Assembly (NCBI RefSeq): GCF_902459465.1
Contig: NC_047071.1
Span: forward strand, 1,488,001-1,552,000
Direction of reading: 5' to 3'
Length of the DNA stretch: 64,000 nucleotides
DNA from: Asterias rubens
Lineage: Eukaryota
Shown here: in pieces, positions 53,501 through 60,683 of the stretch
How positions within the stretch are numbered: the first letter of the stretch is position 1
Layout of the letters: every line of letters starts with the position of its first letter
The notes under the pieces: generated by a model
Told to the model about the DNA's origin: nothing
Databases searched by the model: none
The model's input: the letters and a program-made list of their open reading frames with translations, nothing else
Made by a program: the position numbers and the translations under genes

Positions 53501-53939
53501 GGTGGCCCAGCATTTCATACAGCTTTTTATCTCATTTTGTTATTGGACACACACTCCTATAGCAATTTTGCAACCCGCAAATGTATGGGAGGATTATGAA
53601 CATTGTTAAACTAACCTGCTATGATATGTCAACTTTACTGCTCGAGATTCACAGGAAAGGCGGTGGGGTGATGGGGGGTGGGGGAGGGGGAAAGGGGCAC
53701 CACGCAACCACTGTGTACCGCAGGTAGGGGAAGGGGTGGAGGGTCGGGTTCATCAGTGTTGCTCCGATCTTAGGGGATGCAAGCCTAATATTATCAATAG
53801 ACTTATCAATGATTGGACATACCGAAACCAACTTCACAAATTTAATAGATGGAAATTTGCATCGGGGTTAAACAATATTAATTTTGGTTTTACCCACGTA
53901 CACCGATGTGTGTTATCACGCCTCTCTAGCTACCGGGCA

Positions 53940-54490
53940 ATCTCGGTGGTCATAGCTTGTACGACACTGCTCTAGAATTGCAAAGGTCGTGGGTTTGAAT
54001 TCCACCCGAGTAATAGAGCCTGTGCCTTGTTTCAACAGAGCTTGGAAAAGTACTGACCACCGTATGGTGTATGTGATGGGTGACACAAAAATTAACCTGA
54101 CTTTAAATGGTACAGACAATGATGAGGATCAAACCAACACCATAATAAACTTTGGACGAGGAAACCAGCATGTATTTCAATCTTAACTCCATGTCATTTT
54201 TTTTATTCGATGAAAATTCTCACTCTTTATCAATTTTGAACTGGAATGACTCTATCCGTATTACTTGCTCAATCTGAGTGACTCCCTGCATATCGCAATG
54301 ATCAGAGGAAAGCTGGCCTTTTCTATATATCTGGAATTATGGCGCTTGCATTCATATTCGGCGATTTGTTAATTCTTATGCTCAGCTTTCCTGGCTCTTG
54401 CATGCCGACTTACAATTTCTTAGTTGTTGTGGCTGATAACTTCTTCTCTCGGTCCTCTCCGGAACTCATCTGGAAGCAAAACAGCTCGAC
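53940..54490 (+). repeat. Left arm of an old inverted duplication (decayed SINE plus unique sequence)
   Basis: Reverse complement aligns by eye with 59890-60620, e.g. atgatcagaggaaagctggc, gcattcatatt(c/t)ggcgatttgtta, gtggctgat, ctctccggaact. Confidence 0.8.
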
Positions 54491-55076: not shown

Positions 55077-55984
55077 TTAACCAGTTGCGACATATACATG
55101 CATCTGTCGTTTTAAAATAGTAAGAATTTACAACTTAATGTTCACTGGTGATGAGTCCATCACTCATCAAGGACAAACACTCTTTTACTGTTAAAAAAAT
55201 GATTGTTATAGTTTGTTATAACAACAAAATCATAATTCTATTCGGCAGGGCTCATTCGCTATGAAAGTCAATAAAAGGAGAAGCGATTTGTTGAAAGGGA
55301 TAAAAGGCAGTATAGCCTAACGTCACAAATCACAACTTCATGAAAACTTTGTGTCTCTCATGACTAAACTATTTGCCACCAAAAATGTTAAACAATATCA
55401 ACCTCGTTTAAACAATTAAACAAACAGCAAATTTATACACACAAAATTAACTAACTCTCTACACGTATAAATCATAGTACAACCTAAATGTACATGTACA
55501 TTATTCGCTCCATTGTCATTGTACTGCACTGTAACGTACGTTTAAACCGCGTCAAATATTATTGATGTAGTTGCCTGATACCTTTTGGAGACAACTAGCT
55601 TATGTTTTTCTCCAATTTGGGCGTGTTTTTTTATTTATTTTTTTATTTTAATTTGGCGGTTCATTTCGGAAGAAAGCCAACTATCATAACGTTATGTGGC
55701 AATAGGGGCACATGCCATCCGCCAACCAATGAGAAAACACATAATCGGTCCTGCATTTCTATTTATAGATTACCCAATGACTACAGGCCACCATAAAGAT
55801 TTACTCTCATGCGCGGATGAAGCCACTAAAATTGCAAGCATTTTAATTCAGCTTTTATCTCATTTTCTGAATTCGTTTCCTTTCAAAGTGATGTAGATTA
55901 TGTTGTGATCAACTCTTACACAACTATTTTATTGTCCGCAAGAAAGTGATGGTGATTTAAAACCTATTACAGCGAGCACCAAGT

Positions 55985-56156
55985 CTCGTTTCGAAACCAC
56001 GGCTTCTGCTCAAAATTCGGATCAGGCTATAGCTTGGCCCCGCGGTAGTTTTGACAAAATGCGCGTGCTTTGCGTTATACGTGCTCAGGGCGTCAGACGA
56101 GAAAACGGAGCCTGAAGCCGGATCCACAGCCGAAGCCGTGGATTCGAAAAGGGCCC
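55985..56156. mobile_element. Hairpin MITE (ttcgaaaccacggcttc ... gaagccgtggattcgaaaagggccc) 10 nt downstream of the 766-aa ORF stop
   Basis: Inverted terminal repeats; left end degenerate. Confidence 0.75.
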
Positions 56157-56165
56157 AAGTCTTTC

Positions 56166-58466
56166 TTACAATTCCTGTCGAGTTTTGTCTGCAGCTAGGT
56201 TATCGCCTGGCTTGTTTAATGGGAAAATAGCATGTACCACCTTATGCGCAAACTGACGTTCAGTCGTTGAGTCCATTTGAACCACTTTAGTGCTTCTAAA
56301 GGGTTTGCTAGCAAGCGCGTTTGTTTTCTCACTGATTTGTAGGCTGATGATAACTCTGTCTTGATAATCTGGGGAGAACTTAAATTCTTGCATCTCTGCT
56401 AAGGTATCGGCTTTGTAAGACGCCCCTTCGTAATCCCCAATAACATCTGAATTAGTTGTATCCAATTCCAAAACACTCCCGTGCAGTACTATCTTATTAT
56501 CCGTTTTTCCTGGAGACATAAAGTCTTCTACTTCCTTAAAATCTATTGAAATACTTTGTTGAACACTATGCCAACATTTAATCTCGTGTTCATTGCGAAC
56601 CCAATGCCACACTTCAATGTCCCGGTTTTCAGCTCTGTTTCCAATATCTATTGAGAATGAACCATATGGCTCGTAATAATTCTGCATTACGCCATCGTTG
56701 TCACACGAAAACTCAAAATTGCCAGAAAGATGGTAGTCTTTCAAAACTGTTGGTTTTTCGATGGCGGTTACGGGACTTAGTTGTAATTCAATTGTAACTC
56801 TATCTTGTGAGTCTGGTTTAAATTCCAATTTAGTAAACTTGCTCAGTGAATTTGCTTCGTAAGATTTCCCATCATAATTTCCAATCATATCGTCACCAGT
56901 TGGGTCGTCCTCTTTGACTTGCCCATGTAAAGTTATCTTGTTATTGGCCTCATCCATAAAGCGTTCGCTTTCCTGAAATCTGACCATAAAAGGTTGACGA
57001 TACATTCCACCATTTGTGAACGCGATTTTATTAGCCCCAGACTGCCATATTTTATAGTTTTGATTAATGTTTCTATTCCCAGCGCTAATAGCTAAGGACC
57101 CGAAAGGCTCATATTCAGAACCATGCAAGCCGTCACTATCACATTGGAAACTAAACACACCATTCAGCTGGTACTCTACCAGGTTTGACTCTTGTTCTTG
57201 TATTACTTCTCCTTCTTTGACTAAGGAAATGGAACGGTCCCCACTGTAGCAACATTTACTCAATTCTCTCTGATTGAATGTTTTCCAATCAATTAGATCA
57301 AAACCCAAAGCATTTCCCTTGGATATGCAGTCATCAAGGGCAAGTGCAGTATTACCATCTAATTCCCATAGGTTAGAGAAAACAACGTAACTATGCTCAT
57401 TCTCATTTTTATAATATGCGCTGATTGGAAGTTTCTGACCACTGTTAATTGAAAGGTCATTGATTGAATTATAAACTCTGCTGTAGTCAAATAGTGGAAA
57501 CGCCGGGCCTTGAATTATGGGCAATTCCAGATCTTTGAGCTTCTCGGGACATTCGATCTGCGTAAGATCTGTCAACAAGTCACATACCTTAAGAGTGCTG
57601 GCCTGAGGTAACATATATAACTGACCGAATAGTTCATTTCCTCCTAGACCGGGATCCGAAATGCTCCACGCATCGTCCACTCTTTTGTAGTTTCCTGGTT
57701 TGCTGATGGGATCTTTGATCTCCTCAAGAGTCAAGCCAACCAGATAGATGCCCAACACGTCTTCTAACAGGTGAACAGCATCAGCTGCGGAAACGTCAGG
57801 AAACTTGTTGGCCAAGTCGTAGAGGTAATCGATGACTGCATCCATATCTGCCGCACCATAAGGAGAATGCAACTTGTGATACCCCTGTTGTTTGACAAAC
57901 ATTTTAACAAACATCAGTAGTGCATTGCCGCCCAAGTCTTTGTTTTTGTTCAATGCTGACATCGAATCCGTTGGTTTACGCACTCGATACGAGGCAGAAC
58001 CGCTGCAGACAACATCATCTTCTGAGGTGACATCGTCTTCTGTCAAGTCGCATGTTATCTTCACCTTCTTGGCTGGAGGACCGGTGTATTCAATGGAGAA
58101 ATACCGCACAGCTGCAAACTGGATGTAGTCAAAGTCACCACCACTGTCAAAAATCGCCTTCGTCTCACCGCTTGGCAACTCAATACTGATCTTTCCTTTG
58201 TACTCCGATCCTTGGAAAATTCCATGTGCCTTTCGAAACAGCTCGCCGACGGACATGTTCTTGATCTTTTCGATTGCGGTTATAACAGATATCTGAAATG
58301 AGTCCCAGTTGACAAAAAGCAGAGCTCCGCTGAGCCGGTATCGTTTTGGGCTAGCTGCTTTTTCGCTTGGCTTGTTGTCCTCGGCATGAGACAGCGAAAT
58401 CCACAACAAGCTGAAGACAACAACCAATCGGAATAATTGCTTGAAACTCATGTTCCTCCCCGCCAT
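56166..58466 (-). CDS. Uncharacterised 766-aa secretory-pathway protein: signal peptide, four C2/DUF6598-like beta-sandwich repeats, helical insert, C-terminal RQEL
   Basis: 2.3-kb uninterrupted ORF; good Kozak context (acaaccATGG); n-h-c signal peptide ending SHA|ED; internal repeats at aa ~43-162, ~260-400, ~431-566 and ~577-713; upstream TATA box and a short 5'UTR intron. Confidence 0.9.
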   Translation of the reverse strand: MAGRNMSFKQLFRLVVVFSLLWISLSHAEDNKPSEKAASPKRYRLSGALLFVNWDSFQISVITAIEKIKNMSVGELFRKAHGIFQGSEYKGKISIELPSGETKAIFDSGGDFDYIQFAAVRYFSIEYTGPPAKKVKITCDLTEDDVTSEDDVVCSGSASYRVRKPTDSMSALNKNKDLGGNALLMFVKMFVKQQGYHKLHSPYGAADMDAVIDYLYDLANKFPDVSAADAVHLLEDVLGIYLVGLTLEEIKDPISKPGNYKRVDDAWSISDPGLGGNELFGQLYMLPQASTLKVCDLLTDLTQIECPEKLKDLELPIIQGPAFPLFDYSRVYNSINDLSINSGQKLPISAYYKNENEHSYVVFSNLWELDGNTALALDDCISKGNALGFDLIDWKTFNQRELSKCCYSGDRSISLVKEGEVIQEQESNLVEYQLNGVFSFQCDSDGLHGSEYEPFGSLAISAGNRNINQNYKIWQSGANKIAFTNGGMYRQPFMVRFQESERFMDEANNKITLHGQVKEDDPTGDDMIGNYDGKSYEANSLSKFTKLEFKPDSQDRVTIELQLSPVTAIEKPTVLKDYHLSGNFEFSCDNDGVMQNYYEPYGSFSIDIGNRAENRDIEVWHWVRNEHEIKCWHSVQQSISIDFKEVEDFMSPGKTDNKIVLHGSVLELDTTNSDVIGDYEGASYKADTLAEMQEFKFSPDYQDRVIISLQISEKTNALASKPFRSTKVVQMDSTTERQFAHKVVHAIFPLNKPGDNLAADKTRQEL

Positions 58467-58642
58467 GGTTGTACAACCTGTTGCGTATGTATTGCTCTCT
58501 AGGCAACTTAAACAATTTGATAAATTTGACTACTAACTGTGTTGTTTCACTTCACAATGCAAGACACGAGCGCTCTCAGTGAGAACCACTTAGCAATTGG
58601 ATTTGCAGTGAGGTACCGCAACGATTATAATAGAGTGCAGCG

Positions 58643-58651
58643 TTTTATATA
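58643..58651 (-). promoter_or_regulatory. TATA box (TATATAAAA) of the 766-aa gene
   Basis: Lies ~115 nt upstream of a candidate 60-nt 5'UTR intron (GTTAGT at 58537, caacAG at 58478) that ends 11 nt before the ATG. Confidence 0.55.
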
Positions 58652-59889: not shown

Positions 59890-60620
59890 TATACTGTTTG
59901 GCTTCCCGGACCCAATTTCATAGAGCTGCTTAAGCACAAATAAGCTAAGCACAACAAAATTATGCTTTCAAGAATAAGGTTACCAGCCAAACTGCTATGT
60001 CACATGTATTACCTGTGACTGGTATCCTGCTTATTTCTGCTATAAGCAGGAATTCTTTAAGCAAAGGTGTATGTTTAATCAGCTATATGAAGTCGGGCCC
60101 ATGACAGTTCCGGAGAGGGGTTGGGACGAAGAAGACATCAGCCACCGGAGTTGCAAAATTATAAGTCTGCTAGCAGGAGCAGTAAAAGCTACAGCGAGTA
60201 TAAGATTTAACAAATCGCCAAATATGAATGCAAACGCCAGTTGCATTAAATTGCTAGTCAAATTAAAGAAAATGCCAGCTTTCCTCTGATCATTGTGATA
60301 TGCAAGGAGTCATTCAGATTGAGCGGTGAAATATGGACGTTGAGTCATTTCAGTTCAAATTAAAAAAAGAGTGAGAGTTTTAATCGAATAAATGAAATGG
60401 TGTTTTCAGATTGAAATACATGTTGGTTTCCTCGTCCATTACTACAGTCTCATTTTGTCAAGTTAATTTTGGTTTCAAATTCATACAACTAGCACTGTAT
60501 ACTCAGTACTTTCCCGTGTTCTGTCAAAAAATCACAGAAATATTACTCGGGCTGGATTTTAACCCATTACCTTCTATAGAGCATAGTGGTAAATTATGGG
60601 GCAGTGGTCTAACAAACTAG
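59890..60620 (-). repeat. Right arm of the inverted duplication, interrupted by a Harbinger-like MITE (59908-60100)
   Basis: Similarity to 53940-54490 resumes across the MITE: ccggaactgtcat|gggaagccaaacag versus ccggaactcatctggaagcaaaacag. Confidence 0.75.
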
Positions 60621-60683
60621 ACCTGCGATACACCCAATAGCTAATGTTTGTCCAATCATTGATATAGTGTGTTGATAACTTAA

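Follow-up and report, generated by a model that had tools for sequence, protein, structure and literature searches.

The gene and its surroundings

Within a 64,000-nucleotide (nt) stretch of the Asterias rubens genome (NC_047071.1, positions 1,488,001 to 1,552,000 of the forward strand; 'the window', in whose own numbering positions are given unless another locus is named), the minus strand carries one long open reading frame (ORF). It is predicted to encode a protein that begins with a signal peptide, folds into four C2-type beta-sandwich domains (D1 to D4) and ends in a KDEL-type tail for retrieval to the endoplasmic reticulum (ER). The ORF is intact, running without interruption from an ATG start through 766 codons to a stop, and is 3.6 times longer than the next-longest of the window, which spans 212 amino acids (aa); only 23 ORFs of 95 aa or more are found there, in a sequence with zero N bases. 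No second copy or fragment of the gene is seen in the 64 kb, and a Pfam scan of the window's ten longest other ORFs returned nothing useful. Read from its 5' end, the gene has the following features, with constraint expressed as the ratio of non-synonymous to synonymous substitution rates (dN/dS) and model confidence as the predicted local distance difference test score (pLDDT):

58643–58651, minus strand: TATA-like box (tatataaaa), ~180 nt upstream of the ATG; read from the sequence, with a putative function
58463–58472, minus strand: Kozak context (acaaccATGg); likewise read from the sequence and putative in function
56166–58466, minus strand: complete intronless coding sequence (CDS) of 766 codons and a stop, present once in the window; dN/dS 0.24 against the ortholog L009
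58383–58466, minus strand: signal peptide, aa 1–28, with a hydrophobic core at aa 11–25 and predicted cleavage between SHA and ED; homologs have equivalent N-termini
57969–58355, minus strand: D1, aa 38–166, predicted C2-type beta-sandwich with two inserted helices (models, Foldseek, hhalign against D3, invariant cysteines)
57753–57968, minus strand: predicted helical linker, aa 167–238, about four helices by DSSP of the models; less constrained (dN/dS 0.47)
57201–57752, minus strand: D2, aa 239–422, predicted enlarged C2-type sandwich (alignments, model, Foldseek)
56760–57194, minus strand: D3, aa 425–569, Cry37-like C2 repeat (profile match to Cry37Aa1, 4rhz_B, E = 2.3e-9)
56319–56759, minus strand: D4, aa 570–716, second Cry37-like C2 repeat, a tandem duplicate of D3 (42% identity to D3; hhalign)
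56169–56318, minus strand: C-terminal tail, aa 717–766, predicted to be disordered (pLDDT below 50)
56169–56180, minus strand: RQEL, candidate KDEL-type ER-retrieval motif at the C-terminal end (x-x-E-L conservation; PROSITE pattern)
55928–55933, minus strand: AATAAA, polyadenylation-signal candidate, ~235 nt past the stop codon

The gene is real, intact, adapted to its host and under purifying selection. Its content of guanine plus cytosine (GC) is 42%, with 43% at third codon positions (GC3), against an average of 40% for the window. When compared with the transcript-like ortholog L009, for which dS is ~1.2 and hence near saturation, dN/dS comes to 0.24 over the whole length, with regional values of 0.10 in D1, 0.21 in D2, 0.30 in D3 and 0.22 in D4, rising to 0.47 in the linker and 0.45 in the tail. 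Contigs from two independent Sequence Read Archive (SRA) runs (3377 and 3374 nt) have identical 5' ends and the ORF at 97–2370, an arrangement that suggests a transcript. The preliminary description of this DNA had drawn attention to the lack of introns; not only does this hold for the single ORF seen here but the animal homologs were likewise all recovered as single ORFs, and the absence of introns is therefore general in the family.

At the N-terminus, a basic n-region precedes the hydrophobic core; the 15-mer of highest hydrophobicity begins at aa 11, with a mean Kyte–Doolittle (KD) value of 2.31, and is followed by the predicted cleavage site. This combination bears out the signal peptide proposed at the outset. 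A hydrophobicity scan along the whole protein picks out no transmembrane (TM)-like segment other than this core.

The non-coding surroundings contain repeats of several sizes. A 22-nt inverted repeat (55989–56010 and 56128–56149; 91% complementary, 117 nt apart) sits in the presumed 3' untranslated region, directly past the stop codon, where it could form a hairpin. Further downstream, ~500 nt from the stop and ~270 nt past the AATAAA, lies an A-rich tract (55634–55670), which may be either simple sequence or the remnant of an old poly(A). On a larger scale, an inverted repeat pair of ~600 nt (53804–54383 and 60196–60664) brackets the gene; its collinear segments are 76–95% complementary, one of them with a tRNA-like box, and the two are the only substantial copies in the 64 kb. 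We considered the pair as possible transposon termini but did not adopt the idea, the homologous loci L001 and L007 (described below) having no equivalent; these are probably two copies of an interspersed repeat.

The four domains and their relatives

We built an AlphaFold2 model of the full-length protein on a family alignment of 44 sequences (mean pLDDT 80.9, predicted TM-score (pTM) 0.79), in which disorder is confined to aa 1–36 and 716–766. When this model is compared with the PDB using Foldseek, the high-probability matches (up to 1.00) are exclusively multi-C2 proteins—otoferlin (E = 1.7e-10), myoferlin, dysferlin, the copine BON1, extended synaptotagmin 2, cPLA2 and synaptotagmin—plus the single-domain protein Cry37Aa1. 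Because D3 and D4 alone could have driven the whole-chain search, aa 38–425 were modelled separately (pLDDT 84.2, pTM 0.88); this N-terminal half on its own aligns over ~400–420 columns to tandem-C2 proteins and to Cry37, the target-normalised TM-score for Cry37Aa1 being 0.57–0.68 across searches and 0.68 for aa 38–425. With both the full model and the N-terminal half matching C2 proteins, all four domains are, as modelled, C2-type beta-sandwiches, a fold of eight antiparallel strands, D1 and D2 being joined by a helical linker of ~70 residues. Models, Foldseek and alignments thus agree with the four C2-type domains with acidic loops that had been proposed.

At the level of sequence, compared after cutting the protein into segments, the four are related to very different degrees. 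D3 and D4 share 42% identity over 141 aa (BLASTP, E = 2e-39) and align with a probability of 100% in hhalign, and so represent, on sequence grounds, a clear duplication. D1 and D3 give a weak hhalign match (probability 61%, E = 8e-5), suggesting a remote relationship, whilst D2 has no similarity to D1, D3 or D4 that hhalign can detect and would be C2-like by fold only. By sequence, then, one cannot speak simply of four repeats: that part of the preliminary description stands for the collinear D3 and D4, and for the fold of all four, but is weakly upheld for D1 and fails for D2. Nowhere is the family better conserved than in D2, where the motifs GQLYxLPQA, GPAFPLFD and W-E-x-D-G...DDC-x-x-KG are found.

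A single-protein search of Pfam, NCBIfam and PDB sequences gave zero matches, in line with the claim of an undescribed family, and NCBIfam has no match for the bacterial homologs either. The suggested likeness to C2 and DUF6598 domains has to be divided: the protein is C2-type by fold, but DUF6598 was never matched, by the query or by any of the 44 family members, and the Pfam C2 model (PF00168) is not significant, with no match to the query at E <= 10 and just E = 0.03 for two of the 44. A family profile compared with PDB sequences, by contrast, finds Cry37Aa1 (4rhz_B, residues 7–124 of 126) at the E-value given above, the alignment pairing two loops, E-P-Y-G and G-x-V-K-E-x-D...DD, and a central W. 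This homology extends over D3 and D4 and, more weakly, D1, but not demonstrably to D2; it gives substance to the suspected link with bacterial toxin-type proteins. A relationship to MACPF proteins and cytolysins, on the other hand, found no support, there being no Pfam match to a pore-forming domain (MACPF/CDC or aerolysin type) and no high-probability Foldseek match outside the C2 type, and a viral origin fared no better, the viral structure library BFVD giving generic matches only, all with a probability <= 0.3.

D3 and D4 are homologous to Cry37Aa1 (Xpp37Aa1; 4rhz chain B), from Bacillus thuringiensis, over the whole length of the latter. Saying that, Cry37 is a single 126-aa domain of ~14 kDa that has an aerolysin-type partner, Cry23, whereas here four domains are chained together in 766 aa, D1 and D2 being much diverged and enlarged; and the animal proteins, unlike Cry37, carry a signal peptide and a putative ER-retrieval tail. 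We see no long ORF resembling a Cry23-like partner in the window, and none beside the bacterial homologs. In the papers that we found, Cry37Aa appears just as a beta-rich protein that is produced together with the aerolysin-type Cry23Aa and interacts with it (PMC7387505, PMC4229197), Cry23 and Cry37 each being reported as toxic to a weevil on their own (PMC7387505). A literature search pairing Cry37 with the C2 domain found nothing.

The acidic loops are most regular in D3, where an early loop (E453-P-x-G) and a late loop (E519-x-D521...D525-D526-x-I-G) can be distinguished: E453, E519 and D521 are acidic in every sequence (17–18 animal, 13 bacterial), and D525 and D526 in 17/17 animal and 12–13 of the 13 bacterial ones. 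In D2, [E/D]368 and D370 are kept in nearly all sequences and D378 in most; the acidic loop of D1 (aa 143–151) keeps E143 and D145 in most, with a second acidic pair in about half. The late loop of D4 reads E667-x-D669...S673-D674-x-I676-G677, its first position being acidic in 14/15 sequences and D669 in at least 90%. Animals and bacteria alike conserve the late loop (E-x-D...(D)D) in D1, D2 and D3, and with less strictness in D4. Four cysteines are invariant across animals and bacteria: C139 and C154, which enclose the acidic loop of D1, and C380 and C405 in D2; their conservation would fit disulfides in an oxidising, non-cytosolic compartment. Where residues had been numbered beforehand, as for C154, C380 and E519/D521/D525/D526, the numbering is correct. 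Judging by the order of the strands assigned by DSSP, the early loop (E-P-x-G) and the acidic late one appear to be placed like the loops CBR1 and CBR3 of type-II C2 domains. Ca2+ and an anionic surface are the probable ligands of the acidic clusters.

The C2 domain is known from textbooks as a cytosolic module that binds Ca2+ and lipids. The protein described here has in common with ferlins, extended synaptotagmins, the copine BON1 and the C2 domain of cPLA2 the fold, the tandem arrangement and, putatively, acidic tip loops with a D-x-D...D pattern. Multi-C2 proteins (ferlins, extended synaptotagmins, BON1, synaptotagmins) are, however, cytosolic, often membrane-anchored, and match PF00168; ours has a predicted cleavable signal peptide, conserved cysteines and no TM segment, and would face the lumen, on the opposite side of the membrane.

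The Cry37-like repeat is also found in other company. It follows an ApeC (apextrin C-terminal) domain in the protein P0041, adjoins a chitin-binding CBM_14 domain in P0024 and stands alone in small Clytia hemisphaerica proteins (XP_066922432.1, XP_066915319.1); proteins with the repeat include P0044 and P0060. The arrangement in P0041 recalls apextrin-type immune proteins and thus places the repeat among the extracellular recognition proteins of marine invertebrates; the protein of the window differs from these in having no ApeC, MACPF or CBM domain.

Distribution and origin of the family

An exhaustive HMMER scan of 1.84 billion cluster representatives shows how small the family is: no more than 61 of them match with E <= 1e-3, and this number falls to 29 at a threshold of 1e-10 and to 12 at 1e-30. 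The closest named protein is LOC119719744 of Patiria miniata (P0001), with 72% identity; its RefSeq model, of 610 aa, starts inside D1, lacks the signal peptide and most of D1, and is probably a truncated gene model. Eight clusters at 54–59% identity join the query in a sea-star-type clade, and more distant full-length members (29–41% identity) lie on large eukaryote-type contigs. Terminal repeats number two to four in the animal-type homologs and one in the bacterial homologs.

The surroundings of some of the distant members could be read in part. Directly upstream of P0013 is the ORF of a Pao/BEL-type long terminal repeat (LTR) retrotransposon (L001:1631-8762; 1889 aa, with reverse transcriptase (RT), integrase and DUF1759/1758). 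A TMEM209 (CytochromB561_N) gene, a single ORF of 493 aa (L007:2330-3811), lies ~6 kb from P0075; among its named matches the sponge Dysidea avara ranks first (41%), ahead of Nematostella and hemichordates, and we therefore take the carrier of P0075 to be a sponge-like animal. P0014 shares contigs of ERZ25766727 (436,932 nt) and ERZ26167216 (22,396 nt) with a 504/551-aa paralog ~2.2 kb downstream (P0018/P0114) and with a repeat-only ORF (P0028/P0133), which suggests a local cluster of paralogs.

The bacterial full-length homologs are collinear with the query over aa 35–530 (D1, linker, D2 and D3) at 23–29% identity. Their carriers are Vibrio aestuarianus (WP_172532619.1), Vibrio sp. S12_S33/SA48, V. 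sagamiensis (WP_039982607.1), V. agarivorans, Shewanella sp. WE21 (WP_105252372.1) and M16, Moritella sp. (WP_293141229.1) and Chromobacterium amazonense (WP_146131890.1). These proteins, which apart from that of Chromobacterium belong to marine Gammaproteobacteria, have Sec or lipoprotein signal sequences and, across D1, D2 and D3, the same invariant cysteines and acidic loops as the animal protein; they differ from it in having a single C-terminal repeat, extra N- or C-terminal regions and no x-x-E-L tail, and all are uncharacterised. The name 'Hemolysin', given in UniRef to the V. sagamiensis homolog, is not supported by any Pfam or NCBIfam match. Five bacterial loci were compared:

Shewanella sp. 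WE21 (L002:1-10914, CP023019.1): flanked on one side by type III secretion genes (SctN ATPase, secretin, FliP/SctR) and the gene for an Anthrax_toxA/ExoY-type nucleotidyl cyclase, on the other by a Trans_reg_C (ToxR-like) regulator
Vibrio aestuarianus: adjoins a GbpA-like lytic polysaccharide monooxygenase (LPMO)
Vibrio sp. (L012:4490-12202, JARLUJ010000001.1): after a transposase of insertion-sequence (IS) type (rve), a 952-aa ORF with no Pfam domain and two small ORFs
Moritella sp.: wedged between housekeeping genes
Vibrio sagamiensis: wedged between housekeeping genes

No partner gene recurs beside the homolog at these five loci. That of Vibrio sp. may be a small accessory island, and the Shewanella arrangement is seen again on a Joint Genome Institute (JGI) metagenome contig (L003). 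A search for related loci with a narrower alignment matched V. aestuarianus only, and is not to be taken as a survey of bacterial species.

In a neighbour-joining tree of 505 columns from D1 to D3 (300 bootstrap replicates, counted as unrooted splits), all eukaryote-type sequences separate from all bacterial ones with 91% support. The sea-star-type clade receives 100%, as does a first bacterial group (A, of V. sagamiensis type), and a second (B, with Shewanella, Vibrio and Chromobacterium) receives 86%; groups A and B are 22% identical to each other, and either is 23–26% identical to the animal sequences. This topology fits animal genes that go back to one origin, in a family whose history in bacteria is deep. 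The presence of the family in both marine animals and bacteria makes the horizontal transfer that had been suggested plausible, and we consider a cross-kingdom transfer likely; its direction is unproven, the most economical history being a single old transfer between bacteria and marine animals, probably into the latter.

Probable ER retrieval, proposed function and alternatives

The x-x-E-L signature forms the C-terminal end of 13 of the 14 animal homologs whose sequence reaches the C-terminus, in the versions RQEL, RREL, REEL, RVEL, RGEL, GGEL, GDEL, HDEL, HAEL and HSEL; in the fourteenth, P0014, HDEL is followed by four extra residues (LKIV). The ~50 residues ahead of it are disordered and weakly constrained (dN/dS 0.45). 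No such tail is present in the bacterial homologs, with their Sec or lipoprotein signals. KDEL-type soluble ER residents have in common a signal peptide and a C-terminal [R/H]-x-E-L, as here; to our knowledge none of them is built of C2 domains, and in this the present protein stands apart. RQEL fits the PROSITE ER pattern [KRHQSA]-[DENQ]-E-L, and the experiments of Raykhel et al. (2007) have shown that position -3 of the KDEL code accepts any residue except proline, HAEL and REEL matching KDEL itself in binding to KDEL receptor 1 (PMC2140024). Taken together, signal peptide and conserved tail make retrieval by the KDEL receptor likelier than constitutive secretion, and the protein is, going by its sequence, more likely to be retained in the ER than secreted. 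In the preliminary description it was called secretory; the signal peptide and the lack of a TM segment agree with this, but the conserved tail, there overlooked, points to ER retrieval instead.

The reading that we favour, with a probability of roughly 55%, is that of a functional host gene for a luminal protein of four C2 domains, retrieved to the ER, probably binding Ca2+ and an anionic ligand, and derived from an old transfer between bacteria and animals. The protein would enter the ER through its cleavable signal peptide and be returned there by the KDEL receptor by way of the C-terminal RQEL. Its N-terminal part would be a conserved module of D1 and D2, followed by D3 and D4 as a pair of tandem Cry37-like C2 repeats; each domain would present an acidic cluster on two loops that share one tip of the sandwich, in the manner of Ca2+-dependent C2 domains. 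In the Ca2+-rich, oxidising lumen of the secretory pathway these clusters could bind Ca2+ and dock onto the luminal leaflet of the membrane or onto another anionic ligand. Following transfer, the animal lineage would have gained the x-x-E-L tail and multiplied the last repeat.

Several points weigh against this reading. Patiria miniata is the only named animal source, the other carriers being deduced from the context of their contigs; no poly(A) is seen on the Logan contigs, so that transcription is suggested rather than proven. Some KDEL-like tails are dispensable according to Raykhel et al. (PMC2140024), and the G at position -4 of two sea-star-type relatives (GGEL, GDEL) is not clearly covered by the KDEL code. 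The putative Ca2+ site is read from the order of secondary-structure elements in the models, and D4 has S673-D674 here where most relatives have D-D. An unrooted tree, moreover, cannot give the direction of transfer.

Other explanations can be offered for the same set of observations. The protein might be a secreted effector of immunity or adhesion, binding membranes, glycans or microbes in a Ca2+-dependent manner in the coelomic fluid or mucus, with the x-x-E-L tail merely slowing its export or serving some other end. Such a role would suit a protein with a signal peptide and no TM segment, whose repeat is elsewhere fused to the extracellular modules ApeC (P0041) and CBM_14 (P0024) or found in small, secreted-looking Clytia proteins, whose bacterial relatives are exported, and some of whose animal relatives end in GGEL or GDEL, both weak KDEL signals. 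We nevertheless regard it as rather unlikely: RQEL matches the PROSITE ER pattern, and the terminal E-L is kept at 29–46% identity among animal lineages while the tail around it is unconstrained (dN/dS 0.45), which is hard to explain without selection on the motif. That the protein is a toxin, or an accessory to one, strikes us as very unlikely. The repeats would here aid a separate pore-former, as Cry37 does with Cry23, or damage foreign membranes in defence or predation, with the tail perhaps acting as a signal for retrograde transport in target cells. It is true that Cry37Aa1, which alone among the sequence relatives has a solved structure, forms crystals together with the aerolysin-type Cry23Aa1, that the two are reported to interact and to be toxic each alone (PMC7387505), that one bacterial homolog is named 'Hemolysin' and that another adjoins type III secretion system (T3SS) genes and the gene for an ExoY-type cyclase. 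That name is unsupported, however; neither Pfam nor Foldseek finds a pore-forming or enzymatic domain in the protein, the window contains no long ORF of aerolysin or MACPF type, and no partner gene is conserved beside the bacterial copies.

The history of the family can also be told differently. Bacteria could have captured from their animal hosts a gene that was old in metazoans, passed down vertically and repeatedly lost, with no transfer into animals at all; the animal sequences do form one clade that includes both a sponge-like carrier and sea stars, the stand-alone repeat is present in cnidarians, and the bacterial carriers are animal-associated marine genera that hold the gene in accessory, IS- or island-like contexts. 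We think this unlikely, given that Patiria miniata provides the only full-length match among NCBI-annotated animals, that all animal carriers seen have the gene without introns, that more divergence separates the two bacterial groups than separates either of them from the animals and that the nearest solved relative comes from a Gram-positive bacterium. We give practically no credence to the idea that the gene is an artefact, whether bacterial DNA contaminating the assembly or an ORF due to chance or a transposon, even though introns are lacking, homologs exist in bacteria and inverted repeats stand on both sides of it. Contamination is rejected on account of the host-like GC (42% against 40%), the continuous, eukaryote-type flanks, the TATA, Kozak and AATAAA elements, and the closest relatives, which at 54–72% identity lie on eukaryotic contigs of up to 14.6 Mb, including that of Patiria miniata, as against 23–29% identity for bacteria; the absence of transposase, RT or viral domains from the protein and its dN/dS of 0.24 also speak against an artefact.

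Returning to the luminal C2 protein that we favour, a bolder version can be put forward tentatively, as possible though by no means probable. The family would be the first of multi-C2 type on the luminal side of the membrane: a host-interaction protein with several C2 domains, secreted by marine bacteria, passed once to an early marine animal, domesticated through the gain of its tail and the multiplication of its repeats, and now a Ca2+-responsive binder of the luminal face of the ER membrane. The fold was already known, and the nearest sequence relative is known yet poorly understood; what is new is the four-domain architecture, predicted to be luminal and to end in an ER-retrieval tail, in a family with no curated model and a distribution restricted to certain marine animals and bacteria.

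If correct, this would move the C2 module to the other side of the membrane, with four domains behind a signal peptide, conserved cysteines and an ER-retrieval signal. A family for which neither Pfam nor NCBIfam has a model, and of which no member has been characterised, links Cry37, proteins exported by Vibrio, Shewanella, Moritella and Chromobacterium, and a few marine invertebrates, and so offers a concrete and datable case of genes shared between kingdoms in the sea. The bacterial homologs, one of them in a type III secretion/ExoY locus, gain a first structural annotation, and the Cry37-type proteins, orphan components of B. thuringiensis insecticides, a handle on their nature that is based on homology.

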